From Hyphochytrium catenoides (taxonomy: Eukaryota; Protista; Hyphochytriomycota), in the NCBI GenBank assembly GCA_900088475.1, contig FLMG01000484.1, positions 1-64,000 on the forward strand: a stretch of DNA of 64,000 nt, written 5' to 3'. Position numbers and translations under genes: made by a program. A model generated the notes under the pieces. That model saw only the letters and a program-made list of their open reading frames with translations. It was not told where the DNA came from and ran no database searches. Positions 57,636-64,000 of this stretch are shown piece by piece (position 1 is the stretch's first letter; each line of letters opens with the position of its first letter).

Positions 57636-60600
57636 ATGTACGGCCGAACCATCTGCTTCCACGTGACGTGGCTCCTGGCTGTGTTGCCAGCAGCTATTGT
57701 CTTGGCAGAGTCCAGATTCTCCTTGGTTGCCAGCCGCGGTCCGTGCTTTGTACTTGCTCTGTGGAAGAGATTCAGTGATGCTGACATCCTAACGACACGT
57801 TTTCCGGCCCGTCACCTGGGTGGACCTGCAATCGTCTCATTTCCTTAACTTCTCGCTCTGCCATTCCCAGGACTCTCCAAGGTGATAAATGGCATCCGGT
57901 CCACCGTTTCTAGGTCGCCAGCCCAAAGGNNNNNNNNNNNNNNNNNNNNNNNNNNNNNNNNNNNNNNNNNNNNNNNNNNNNNNNNNNNNNNNNCACACGG
58001 GAACGGTCGATGTAGGTCCTTTTCTCAATTTATCTAAAAGGCCGCCGCTTGAGCCCTCGTTCACAACCAAACAAGCCAATGCCACTGCATTTATTCTTTC
58101 CAACTCTCTCGAAGTTTGATCTCAATCTATCTTTGGCTCTGCTGCTCTTCGCCATCAACAGCATACGGTTAATGTGCTCCTTCAAAGATCTACTTGTGCT
58201 TTTCCTCTCCAGTCTGAACTCCCTTTCTCCCGGTTATGCGGCGACTGCAGTGGGTGTTCGATAGTGGAGCACCTCTAGTCCATGCCTCGAAGTCTTCAGC
58301 AGACTTTCAGGGTGCCATTGTGCCGGCTACGGACGGACGAATAGTCCACATCGTAGACAGCACGGTGAACACTCTGGATATTAAAGCCCAAGACATAGTG
58401 AAAAAGAGTCCTTTCGTGAGCAATGATGGCAAGTCTTTGTTCACGGGGAAAAAGACCACCACTTTGTTTGTTCTGGACCTCAAGTCAGGACAATCCACGG
58501 TACGACCTTACTGTGCGATCCACTGCTTCTGGACGTCTTTCTGCTGTGTTCGTTGCGTTCGCTTATTTCTCCAACGGCTTGGTCTCCTTATAACGTTTTG
58601 CATTCACTCCTTTGCACTAAAGCCTTGCCCTTGTCATCCTTATAGTTCTGCCTACTGATGGTCTTATCACTCCTGCCTTTCTAGTAATTGTAGCATTCGT
58701 GTCGTGCGCAATTGTCTGGCAACCTTCTCTTATAGTTTCTTCGCCCTTTTTCTAAGACTGGATAATCAGGCTTCTTGCTAATCCTGGCCTTTCTTGTGAT
58801 TCGTCCAGATGACTCTTGCCGATCAATGCCCACAGCCGGACCTGAAGTCAACGGCAGGTCTTCTTTCTCGGGAAGAGAGGACAGAAGATGACGGCCAAGA
58901 GATAGAGGATGACCTCTCGGTGGAAGTGGAGGAAGAAGAAGACTTGTATAACAATGCTGAAGAACCCTATCATGACTCTCAGGAAGACATCATTCCTGAA
59001 AAAGATCGACCGGCGATGTGGGTCAGCAGAACTGACTATGCGGTTCGTGCGTTTAGCACCGAGCTTAGAGCTCAGCAGTTTGAGTTTACCTACAGGTATT
59101 ATCTCCTGATAACAGTACGGTAATGCATCTCAGTCTGACTTTTTGGCGGCCCTCTTTCGGCTCTGGGATGCTGGCCAGCGATTTGCGTATCCTCTCCCAT
59201 TCTAGGGACAGCTTGCAGTGTGGCGATGGAGTCCCCGTCAACTTAAAGGATATCGACCTTGTCGTGGGCGAATCAGGTAAACACTTTTGGTGCTAGATAC
59301 AAGCAGGGTGAACGACAGCTATGAAGATGGAACCACACGGGAAAGACAACTGAAGCAATGTCGTAGAGGTGTAAACCTGGAAGGAAGCCGAGTTCTAAAA
59401 CCATGGAGCTCTTAAGATGTTACGGATTTATACTCAAAGCTTCGCCTTATTCTACTTCCGGTCTAGGCGTCCTGCACTACCGCGAGCGCATTTCAGGCAA
59501 CGTGTGGTCTGCCGATTTGGGCTCTCACATAGTAAACGTTTTGAGCCCTTCAACAGCCAACACTCTTCCTCTGAAGAGACTTGGGCATGTGCAGGGAAGC
59601 ATGCAAGACGTTACCGTCACATCGGATGTGAGAGGAGGAGACGCAGCTGATACTGCCCTACTTCGGCTCGATCAGCGCGGAGAGCCGTTCGCTGTCACAG
59701 GTTCACTCATCGACTCCTTTGGGTTTGTTTGGAACGAGGGAGAATGGCAGGTATGAGAGATGCACCACCAAGCCAGCTGGTAGTTTCTTAGCCTGGCTTG
59801 TGCATTGTTAGCCTGGCTCTTGCACTGCTGCACCTTGCAGTTTCCTGACCCGATGATGTCACCGACTAGGCGGTCAATAACCCTGGCAACAACGATAACG
59901 CAGCAGTTATTCCTTTTGTGAGGCAGCTATTGGACTCCGAGGCTGATAGTGGACGATCTGGAAAATGCCACGACGGAAGCTTCTTGTGCTTGGTGGGTTT
60001 ACTTACGACAAATCTTAGCACCGAAGGTGAGAAGCATGCTTCCAAGGCATCGCTGTGTTGTGGCTCCTTATGTTCCCTTTTGGCGCCAACAAGAGTCTGA
60101 GAATCTGTGTGATAGCTCCTTGGTATGAGCTATAGGGATCTAGCTTACGACAAAGAGTCAGATTTCTCGCTGTTAGTCTAGCATCACCATCGCCCTTTAG
60201 CCTGGTCTGAGTCTACCTTCGGTGACTTCTTGTCAGACTAACGTCACCTCTGCAGCTGTACTGAGTCGTTTTGACTACATATGGTCGGATCCGCTGGTTT
60301 GGCTTCTGACAGTCCTTAGCACCTTGCTGCTTCTGGCAGTTGTTTTCCTTATGGGTACAGTTTACCGCCAGTGGAGGCAAATAAAGAGCTCAGGTACCAA
60401 TCTGTTTGCGGTATTATGACCTATAATACTGGTTGTCTGTTCTGCAGTCGCTGACTTTCTTTCTATTATGTTCAGCAGCTGACGTAAAGCAAGAATCGCA
60501 AACCCAAAATGGAACGAACGAAGAATCCACCCTGGCAAGGGCGCGCCGCGACAGCGCAGGGTTTATTTGCGTGGGCTCTCTGAAACTGTCTGATGAGGTA

Positions 60601-63600
60601 CTAGAATTCTTCAAAGTCCGCGAAAACTAACAGGAATTGGACCCCTTGTAAGTTCTCAGTTGCCCCTAACTTTCCTTTCTTCTAATTTGACAGATTTTGG
60701 GGTACGGAAGCCATGGGACAGTGGTATATGCAGGGCTTCTGGGTAATAGGCAGGTAGCTATCAAGAGAATGCTACGACAATTCCACAGCAGCGCGGACAA
60801 GGAGGTCAGAGTTATCTGCTTTCTCATAATAGTTATCCTTCATAGTCGTTCTCAAAGTATTTGGTTATATTCAAAGTCTTGCTTTGGTCTGTGCATAAGC
60901 TCGACTTACTTGGTGATTGATGTGATGTCGTTTACGTTCTCCAGTCCTACCTCATGGGTCAACAGGGCTAAAGTTCTCTTATATCCCACAGATTCAGCTG
61001 CTGATCCATTCAGATGGGCACCCCAACGTGGTGAGATACTTTGCAAGAGAAGTAGAGGGAGACTTCGTGTACCTCGCACTCGAGCGGTGTAAGGTAAGGT
61101 TTCGCAATGACTGGGAGACATCATAGCGACTGGAAAGAGTCAGAGGATTACGAACAATGAGAGCCGATAAGGAGAGAAGATGGAGATGCAGCATATCCAA
61201 AGACAAAGTGGCAAGCTACTAAGCGATAACTGTAGGGCTCGCTATCGGACTTTCTTGCCACTGTTAAGGCGGCGGAAAGCCGTTCTCAGGTGCTTACCTC
61301 AAATTTCCTCCCCAAACCCTTGCGGCGGTGGCTGCGAGAATTGGGTTCTGGAGTTGCTCACCTTCACTCTCTAAAAATCCTGCATCGGGATCTAAAACCG
61401 GGCAATATTCTGATCTCTGATGAGCCGATTAAAGGTACCCATACCAGAATGTCCTCTCTTGCTTCTAGCGGCAGCTGGCCCAATGTTAAGTGGCAGGTCC
61501 GGTCTGTTTTCAAGTGATGGTCGAGTCCACCCTTCAACTTTAAGTGCCTCAGTCGTGTTACTTGTTCGACGGCTGCGGACCTATATTGTCACAGAGCAAT
61601 CCGTCACAAGCCAATTTGCTCTCCGTTCTTTTAGGTTTCTATCTCGGGAGACCGAAGATCTCCGACATGGGCTTGGGCAAACAACTCGATCAAGATCAGA
61701 GCTCATTCGGCCATAGCTCTTTCGGTCTAAGGCGTCAGAAGCTAAACCCAGGCAGCAATGAAGACGATAAGGATGAAAGCTCAGCAAGAGCTCCTGGAAG
61801 CGTAGGCTGGCAGGCACCTGAGATTGTTGCTCTTAGGGGTGCAAACTTACCTTTCTCGGAGGGGTCTGAGACCTCCGCTGAGGCACCGTCCAGGCGCCAT
61901 ATTAATGGTGCCGATGATGGAGAGGCCAGCGACAACTCTAGCAGTGGCCGGGCGATCCTGTCTAAGCGGACGGCGGCTGTGGACATCTTCTCTCTGGGCT
62001 GCGTATTCTACACGGCGATAGACTCCGGTAATCATCCTTTTGGAGAATGGTTCGAAAGAGAAAGGAACATTATTATGGTAAGATCTAACCGTTTTCTGAA
62101 AGTTAGCACGTAAAGCCAGAGAACCTGGCAGAAAGAGTACGGAAATCGCAGACGGGGAGATGAAAAGATGACTCTCTTCTCTGACATCTCCTCTCAACAT
62201 CATCTACTATGGTAGGGTGAGAAGAACCTTAGGGCACTCCGTCAGCTGCCTACAGCGCGTCATTTGCTTTCACAGATGCTAGACCAGGAGCCTGCGGCAC
62301 GGCCCTCAGCGGCAGAGGTAGTAGGCCATCCTACCTTCTGGGAAGAGGAGAAAACCATTGCCTTCTTGCAGGACCTCAGCGATCGACTGGATAAGGAGGA
62401 CCGGAATGGACCACTAATTCAGGGTGGGATGAAGGTTCCTTCGTATTATTCGGCTTAAAGCGCTGCGGTCTGACACCTTGACCACCTGTCCACGTGTGAA
62501 TTTGACTTCCTTGACTCCATGTTACCCGGTGCTTAGACCTAGAGTCTCGCGCCAATCGTGTCTTTCCGGACTGTAGCTGGGAGGGCCAAGTGGACAAGCT
62601 GCTCGTTGAATGCATGCTGAAGTACCGGCGATACAACTATAACTCCTTAGCCGACTTCTTGAGGCTTTTTCGAAATGAGAGACATCATTATCATGAGCTT
62701 CCGCAAGAGGCACAGCAGGTCCTTACTTGGCTGGCCCTTCCACCTCGTTGATAGCTAGTAACTATGCGTGCTGCGGTACACATCATTACTGGCTACCGTT
62801 CTCGCTGATCTTTCACTTTGCTTGTCCTCCGTTAGTGATTGCCAGCATCTCTAACGCAGCAGGACGATTATGTGGGCTGACTTGATCTGTGTACCATCCG
62901 TTTTTAGCTACTCGGAGAGTTGCCGGAGGGCTTCCTCGCCTACTTTCTCAACCGTTTCCCGTCGCTTTTGATCACGTGTTACACTTTTGCCTCTGAGTAC
63001 TTCTACGACGAAAAGCTGTTCCAGAGCTATTTTGGGCCCGCATCCAAGCGCTTCGCGGTGCGTACTTCTCCTGCTACGTCTTCAATTCGCGTCTCTTATG
63101 CAGAACTTCTAATTTATCGCCTTTAGTGCGAACTTCGTCTATTCATATGACTCATATGAACCTAGAAACTGTCATATGAGTTGTAGAGCCATGAGTCACA
63201 GACTAGTCTCATCCATAGCATCCTTTTCCTTTCTGCATTGCATGTCGGTACATCGTAGCTAAAAGCACAGAAGCGACAGTCAGGGCAAACTCGCTCTTGC
63301 ATTCTTTGGCGAGACCGCCTCAAAACTCCTCGCGGATGGCTCAGGCCGGCACCCGAGTGGATTGCTGATACGTCTTTCCGGGTGCGGTCGGCATTGAAGG
63401 ATAATTTGAGCCGCACAGACGAGCGCTACCGCACTTCCTTTTGTGCTAACTGGATGAAGAGCACTGGTTTAGAGTGCAGATTTGGTAAGCGAATTCAAAA
63501 CACGGAACTAGCGCGTATGAATGAGGAGTCCGAGCTCTGATGCGGGATGGAGCCGCTTTAATCCCTTGAGGAGCCATCCTTTGTAAAGCCTGCGGCCATC

Positions 63601-64000
63601 TTGAGGCCTCCGAGAAGTCGCCGCGCTACCTCGGCCGCGGCGGGTAAGACAATTATTGACCAGATGGCTCCTTTTTGCAGGCGCTCGATGTGCATTTGCA
63701 CATGGTCATCATGAATTAAGGTTGTTTAAGGATCAGATTGACCGATGGGCGGACGATGGCACTCCTCTTCCTCTTCTTGCGCTGGGAGGGAAGAACGGGG
63801 ACAGTGTGGCCAGCGATAAGCTCCCACCAAAGACCAAAACGAAGGTGAGGCTCCTCCGCTTTCCCTTAATTTCATACAGCTCTGATAGTTTAACGAAAAA
63901 ATGTCTCCATTGGCTCACCGTCCACGCACAACCGTCGTCGATACAGCTCTGCAACTTTTTTGGGTCGCCTGTGGGGTGCAGAGATGGTGACAACTGCAGG
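57636..64000 (+). CDS. IRE1: IRE1 ER-stress kinase/endoribonuclease with a C-terminal CCCH zinc-finger extension (3'-partial; gap N 57930-57993 inside)
   Basis: Signal peptide; lumenal motifs [37 protein letters not shown]; TM near 60295-60360; [72 protein letters not shown]; KEN domain FLQDLSDR...KYRRY...[15 protein letters not shown]; CCCH exons at 63259-64000. Confidence 0.93.
59788..59827. repeat. Imperfect 20-bp tandem duplication (TTAGCCTGGCT...) in an IRE1 intron
   Basis: Visible directly. Confidence 0.75.

Follow-up and report, generated by a model that had tools for sequence, protein, structure and literature searches.

In yeast, animals and land plants, IRE1, the RNase of the endoplasmic reticulum (ER) stress response, ends 60–70 residues after the R-N-x-x-H-H motif of its KEN domain. 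Green-algal IRE1 proteins carry at least one CCCH zinc finger, which is absent from land-plant IRE1 and might help to recruit mRNA to the ER (2024, PMC11077094). The green-algal combination is also present in a 2013 table (PMC3710099, Table 1), and PMC11077094, citing Yamaoka et al. 2018, gives the Chlamydomonas protein CrIRE1 C-terminal CCCH fingers. For Volvox, the NCBI and UniProt entries of the IRE1 VOLCADRAFT_107956 (P0191) list the kinase, KEN and two zf-CCCH domains, with the CCCH part located after KEN on the cytosolic side. Our literature search found no paper on the tail of stramenopile IRE1. In this work, an IRE1 gene with such a tail is described from Hyphochytrium catenoides, at positions 58236-64000 of contig FLMG01000484.1; the whole analysed stretch (positions 1 to 64,000 of the contig, 64,000 nucleotides) is referred to as the window, and all features lie on its + strand. 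Behind the KEN exons, the gene almost certainly continues into a short linker, a tryptophan (Trp) motif and CCCH zinc fingers. By its kinase–KEN sequence, it is a member of an extensive IRE1 subfamily from stramenopile algae and related organisms; all subfamily members sampled in the tree have this module.

An initial annotation of the window had proposed the IRE1–CCCH fusion and considered it an unusual variant, with the remark that yeast, plant and animal IRE1 end shortly after KEN. The fusion itself is supported by the homology of the tail to 127 proteins, by a gene structure free of stop codons and by the kinase–KEN tree. The early end of IRE1 is correct for yeast, animals and land plants. 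The reading as an unusual variant is not supported, since a large stramenopile clade has this architecture as a rule, and since it is public for Volvox and was published for green algae along with a like functional proposal. The fusion is neither unique to this genome nor new: the window gene is a divergent family member with an extra finger, and what the window contributes is chiefly a correct gene model and the placement of the gene in a family, and no system of a new kind.

Outside IRE1, a comparable arrangement is found in Regnase-1/MCPIP1 (ZC3H12A), which combines a PIN endoribonuclease with one flanking CCCH finger that helps to hold the RNA. The likeness to the window gene is one of principle, namely an endoribonuclease with a flanking CCCH finger. 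The PIN fold, however, is unrelated to KEN/HEPN, Regnase-1 is soluble, and its finger directly adjoins the nuclease.

The post-KEN module and the subfamily that carries it

The spliced gene model comprises 17 exons and 1054 codons with zero stops. In the encoded protein, a protein kinase is directly followed by KEN (Ribonuc_2-5A), and the catalytic motifs of both domains are present (V-A-I-K and H-R-D-L-K-P-G-N in the kinase, R-N-E-R-H-H in the RNase). Five family proteins match the luminal, kinase and KEN exons of the window in collinear order (tblastn). The KEN domain is split between the exons 62537-62718 (Pfam Ribonuc_2-5A, E 2e-15) and 62908-63057 (profile positions 87-127 of 127, E 7e-10). 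The last of the 127 profile positions is reached at residue 42 of the 50 encoded by the latter exon, and the domain ends ~8 codons before the donor 63057/63058.

From here, intron 14 (63058-63258, GTGCGT...TAG, phase 0, 201 nt) leads to exon 15 (63259-63484), which encodes the short linker, the Trp motif (I-L-W at 63301-63309 and R-G-W-x6-W at 63331-63360) and, from 63424, the first half of finger 1. The finger is interrupted by intron 15 (63485-63680, GTAAGC...CAG, phase 1, 196 nt). Its second half (63681-63721) opens exon 16 (63681-63844), which continues with a conserved R-W 7 residues on and a spacer. Behind intron 16 (63845-63946, GTGAGG...CAG, phase 0, 102 nt), exon 17 (63947-64000) ends together with the window and contains the start of finger 2. 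The coordinates, frames and splice sites first proposed for these three introns are all confirmed; each is GT-AG, and they are typical of the rest of the model, in which 16/16 introns are GT-AG with lengths of 82-309 nt. The only correction to that model is a small one upstream, where the penultimate KEN exon is 62537-62718, with an acceptor confirmed by an RNA contig.

When spliced, finger 1 has the spacing C-x10-C-x5-C-x3-H and scores 26.2 bits with zf-CCCH (PF00642, cut-off 20.5) and 31.5 bits with zf-CCCH_UNK (cut-off 31.1). Neither of the unspliced half-exons reaches any Pfam cut-off; that only the spliced finger passes is good internal evidence for intron 15. Finger 2 begins ~50 residues past finger 1, with the lead-in K-T-K-L. 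It is visible as C-x8-C-x5-C up to base 64000, the His being outside the window, and matches zf-CCCH_4 weakly (E 0.03, below the cut-off). Of the "at least two fingers" in the earlier proposal, the first is thus complete and the second is probable from its visible part.

The largest kinase exon of the window served as the query against 1.8 billion representative proteins, scanned in full, and retrieved IRE1 sequences with up to 53% identity across the full kinase exon. A CCCH finger follows KEN in 75 of the 96 relatives from this first search that hold the KEN active-site motif, and in 48 of 59 from a second search. The relatives with short canonical tails in the first search are partly fragments and partly distant IRE1s. 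The order KEN, R-G-W-x6-W, CCCH is present in 127 database IRE1 proteins. The named members are diatoms (Attheya, Seminavis, Epithemia, Amphora, Cylindrotheca, Amphiprora and Staurosira) and the chrysophyte Ochromonas danica. Several module-bearing members are derived from transcriptomes, such as the MMETSP sequence of Attheya. Four relatives encode the entire protein in a single uninterrupted genomic open reading frame, so that the fusion there needs no inference of splicing, whereas the window gene is split by many introns.

The window tail aligns with the family tails along its length, through I-L-W, R-G-W-x6-W, R-Y-R-T-S-F-C, C-x10-C and E-L-R-x7-R-W. In the two family alignments (A1 and A2), the columns W27, W34, C62, W65, G70 and C73, together with further C, A, H, G, E and R columns, are nearly invariant, and all of them are conserved in the window. 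The window thus shows the combination that defines the family, R-G-W-x6-W followed by C-x10-C-x5/7-C-x3-H with F-A-H-G-x-x-E-L-R, located 3' of KEN. In comparison with the diatom and chrysophyte proteins (Seminavis robusta "IRE1-like" P0218, Attheya septentrionalis P0151, Epithemia P0220, Cylindrotheca P0234 and Ochromonas danica P0201) and with environmental relatives (P0092, P0097, P0104 and P0049), the common plan consists of the luminal part, transmembrane helix, kinase, KEN, a linker of variable length, R-G-W-x6-W, one finger similar to those of tristetraprolin (TTP), and E-L-R ... R-W. The finger spacing in the window is that of the environmental relatives (C-x10-C-x5-C-x3-H), while the diatom and chrysophyte fingers are of the type C-x10-C-x7-C-x3-H. 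The linker between KEN and the module has ~25 residues in the window, the shortest among these proteins, and >200 in diatoms; such variability points to a tethered rather than a docked module. The second CCCH finger of the window is shown by none of the other 127 module-bearing IRE1s. No other tail in the alignment diverges as far as that of the window, which shares 23-34% identity with the rest.

Two further searches with tails of relatives were less informative. The homologue search with the P0104 tail returned P0104 itself only, this tail being too divergent for the word index. In the ESM Atlas, the P0092 tail retrieved only generic CCCH clusters (scores 0.62-0.64) with no useful taxa.

Some features of the family tails may be noted separately. 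Pfam zf-CCCH does not detect the C-x10-C-x7-C-x3-H finger type of the diatom and chrysophyte proteins (e.g. P0218:1409-1432), and consequently domain-architecture resources list these proteins as kinase and KEN only. Diatoms and chrysophytes also have an extra block behind the finger (e.g. P0006:1255-1330), R-W-G-x-L-V-D ... S-G-G-E-D-x-x-G-A-A-R-S-I-E, with no Pfam match. The visible part of the window tail has no counterpart of this block.

A maximum-likelihood tree was calculated on the kinase and KEN only, with the tails excluded. The window falls within a clade of 31 rows (support 91/88) that consists solely of module-bearing IRE1s, and is sister to the C-x5 finger type (support 93/85), so that it groups with the family also by these two domains. 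The green-algal IRE1s group with land plants, apart from this clade. Their fingers form an adjacent pair ending in C-x-F-x-H-P, without the Trp motif and without F-A-H-G-x-x-E-L-R. An assignment of the window gene to the green-algal tandem-CCCH IRE1s was considered and rejected, in view of the other finger type, the lack of the Trp motif in the green-algal form and the separate clade with land plants. On these grounds the stramenopile-type and green-algal fusions look independent; the alternative is a loss of the fingers in land plants. The 2018 abstract of Yamaoka et al. reportedly mentions a C-terminal tandem zinc-finger domain in the Chlamydomonas IRE1.

As judged from homology, gene structure and phylogeny, the IRE1 and the CCCH module are almost certainly fused in one polypeptide. 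The best explanation of the locus as a whole, which we regard as likely, is that the window holds the 3' portion of an authentic IRE1 gene, with the luminal sensor, transmembrane helix, kinase and KEN RNase followed by a C-terminal tail.

Finger type and the possible role of the tail

The best matches of finger 1 among solved structures are POS-1 (6nzl), tristetraprolin (1m9o) and TIS11d (1rgo), with E-values of 1e-9 to 2e-8, in agreement with the TIS11/ZFP36-like lead-in that the initial annotation had pointed out. The matches span both the lead-in and the C-x-F-A-H-G-x-x-E-L-R segment. The window resembles the first finger of the tristetraprolin/TIS11/POS-1 proteins in its R-Y-[KR]-T-x-x-C lead-in, in the aromatic positions and in the C-x-F-A-H-G-x-x-E-L-R segment. 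In finger 1, F occupies both of the aromatic positions with which TIS11d stacks on RNA bases (1RGO). The tristetraprolin/TIS11/POS-1 proteins, in contrast, lack an enzyme domain, and their two C-x8-C-x5-C-x3-H fingers are separated by 18 residues. The window has x10 as its first spacing, and its second finger follows only after ~50 residues, with a different lead-in. The window gene was consequently not assigned to the TIS11/tristetraprolin tandem zinc-finger proteins (C-x10, ~50-residue gap, K-T-K-L lead-in), and the relation is one of resemblance.

A structure model was made for the module of Seminavis, a relative. AlphaFold models its Trp motif and finger with confidence (mean predicted local distance difference test, pLDDT, of 74), and the finger superposes on TIS11d with 1.8 Å over 41 columns; for such a small domain, the Foldseek E-values are weak.

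The tail may be pictured as a module on a flexible tether that binds single-stranded RNA and faces the cytosol at the ER membrane. By holding an unpaired, probably U/A-rich, sequence beside the cleaved stem-loops, it would concentrate RNA substrates locally around the KEN active site. The outcome would be the recruitment of a bZIP-type messenger for unconventional splicing, of ER-bound messengers for decay, or both. A wider proposal, which we offer as a tentative one, is that the stramenopile-type tail is ancient and was gained separately from the green-algal tandem CCCH, that it decides which messengers reach KEN, and that the two-finger form of the window is a more specific variant. If so, two algal lineages would independently have given the ER-stress RNase an RNA-binding finger. 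To find its substrate, IRE1 depends in yeast on a 3' element in HAC1, in animals on the paused XBP1u nascent chain, and in plants on the membrane anchor of bZIP60; a finger for single-stranded RNA built into IRE1 itself would then be a fourth solution. The module is conserved in ecologically dominant algae (diatoms and chrysophytes) and in this soil organism.

Several points weigh against the reading of the locus as a fused IRE1 whose tail selects RNA; some concern the function and others the gene. As for the function, the finger type alone suggests that the tail probably binds RNA, and on the same basis an influence on which RNAs are cut is possible but doubtful. A single TTP-type finger binds only ~4 nt and offers little sequence specificity. 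In the diatom fingers, the C-x7 loop is basic and one of the two stacking aromatics is missing. These last points would also fit a real fusion in which the tail anchors or regulates IRE1 instead of picking cleavage substrates, for example by contacting ribosomal or signal-recognition-particle RNA at the translocon, by clustering on RNA, or as a protein-binding or autoinhibitory element. For such a role also speak the Trp motif and the post-finger segments (e.g. S-G-G-E-D-x-x-G-A-A-R-S-I-E in diatoms and chrysophytes), which have no known RNA-binding precedent, and the human IRE1, which associates with ribosomes and translocon RNAs. However, the window finger retains the TTP-type lead-in and both aromatic positions, and the second finger of the window suits messenger-type single-stranded targets. 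We consider an anchoring or regulatory tail unlikely as the explanation of the whole, though the observations fit it and substrate choice alike. Finally, the Chlamydomonas IRE1 with its CCCH fingers still splices a bZIP messenger, the stem-loops of which lack the full CxGxxG motif (PMC11077094), and a different unfolded-protein response, as was suggested for the window, is therefore not implied by the fusion.

As for the gene, its end lies beyond the window. The closest relatives share no more than ~44-53% identity, too little for a comparison between close genomes. The one public RNA run with matching contigs has no coverage 3' of 62733, and the junctions 63057/63259, 63484/63681 and 63844/63947 are unsupported by transcripts. 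The search of public sequencing runs with exon 15 (63259-63484) gave DNA runs only and no RNA run, and the spliced junction 63057/63259, searched with open wobble positions in metagenome contigs, gave 0 matches. Two metagenome loci fetched with exon 15 (L001 and L002) were discarded as chance matches of the peptide W-L-R-P-A-P-E-W on contigs without IRE1. The case for the junction 63057/63259 is one of structure and homology.

As no RNA run covers this junction, two genes are conceivable: IRE1 would end by reading into 63058-63126, and the CCCH exons would belong to an independently started zinc-finger gene further downstream. Retention of intron 14 indeed leads to an in-frame stop at 63124-63126, and the read-through product has the length after R-N-x-x-H-H known from yeast, animal and land-plant IRE1. 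Nevertheless, we find two genes very improbable. Exon 15 has a stop codon immediately upstream (63256-63258), and its first in-frame ATG lies inside the finger. Between the read-through stop and exon 15 there are only 132 nt, into which a terminator, a promoter and a first exon would have to fit. Moreover, homologues of the Trp motif and finger lie within the IRE1 polypeptide itself in the 127 proteins, four of them uninterrupted genomic reading frames, and the kinase–KEN tree places the window inside the module-bearing clade. That the tail is a decaying and no longer functional relic of the ancestral module, as its divergence and the missing post-finger block might suggest, is hardly credible, given that all zinc ligands and the nearly invariant Trp, Gly and Glu-Leu-Arg positions are intact, that three canonical splice-site pairs and an open frame over four exons are kept, and that a second finger was gained, not lost.

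The gene upstream of KEN

Exons 1-12 (58236-62423) encode part of the luminal sensor, the transmembrane helix and the kinase, as judged from the tblastn order and the stop-free splicing. The luminal exons show weak matches to the relatives. The putative transmembrane segment corresponds to a hydrophobic helix in the exon 60256-60393 of the spliced model, and the kinase domain extends over 60694-62423, where IRE1 relatives match the exons in order. The N-terminus of the model has no signal peptide, and a run of N is located at 57930-57993, just 5' of the exon in which IRE1 can first be recognised; the actual start of the gene is probably either absent or situated beyond this run.

Contigs of the RNA run confirm two introns, 62078-62215 and 62424-62536 (junctions 62077/62216 and 62423/62537). 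The contigs (window positions 62031-62663) are ~97-98% identical to the window but not identical (e.g. C>T at 62577), which suggests that the run derives from a related strain or species.

In the kinase, the D-F-G motif reads D-M-G (I-S-D-M-G-L-G, 61658-61678). The NCBI label of the Seminavis relative is "inactive ... IRE1-like". In the RNase motif (62671-62691), a Glu follows R-N where most IRE1s have Lys; the position varies within the clade, where K, Q, R or M occur in the relatives. Two long inserts are found outside the Pfam kinase match, an acidic one in the luminal part (58809-59010) and a Ser/Asp/Glu-rich one in the kinase activation segment (61700-61960).

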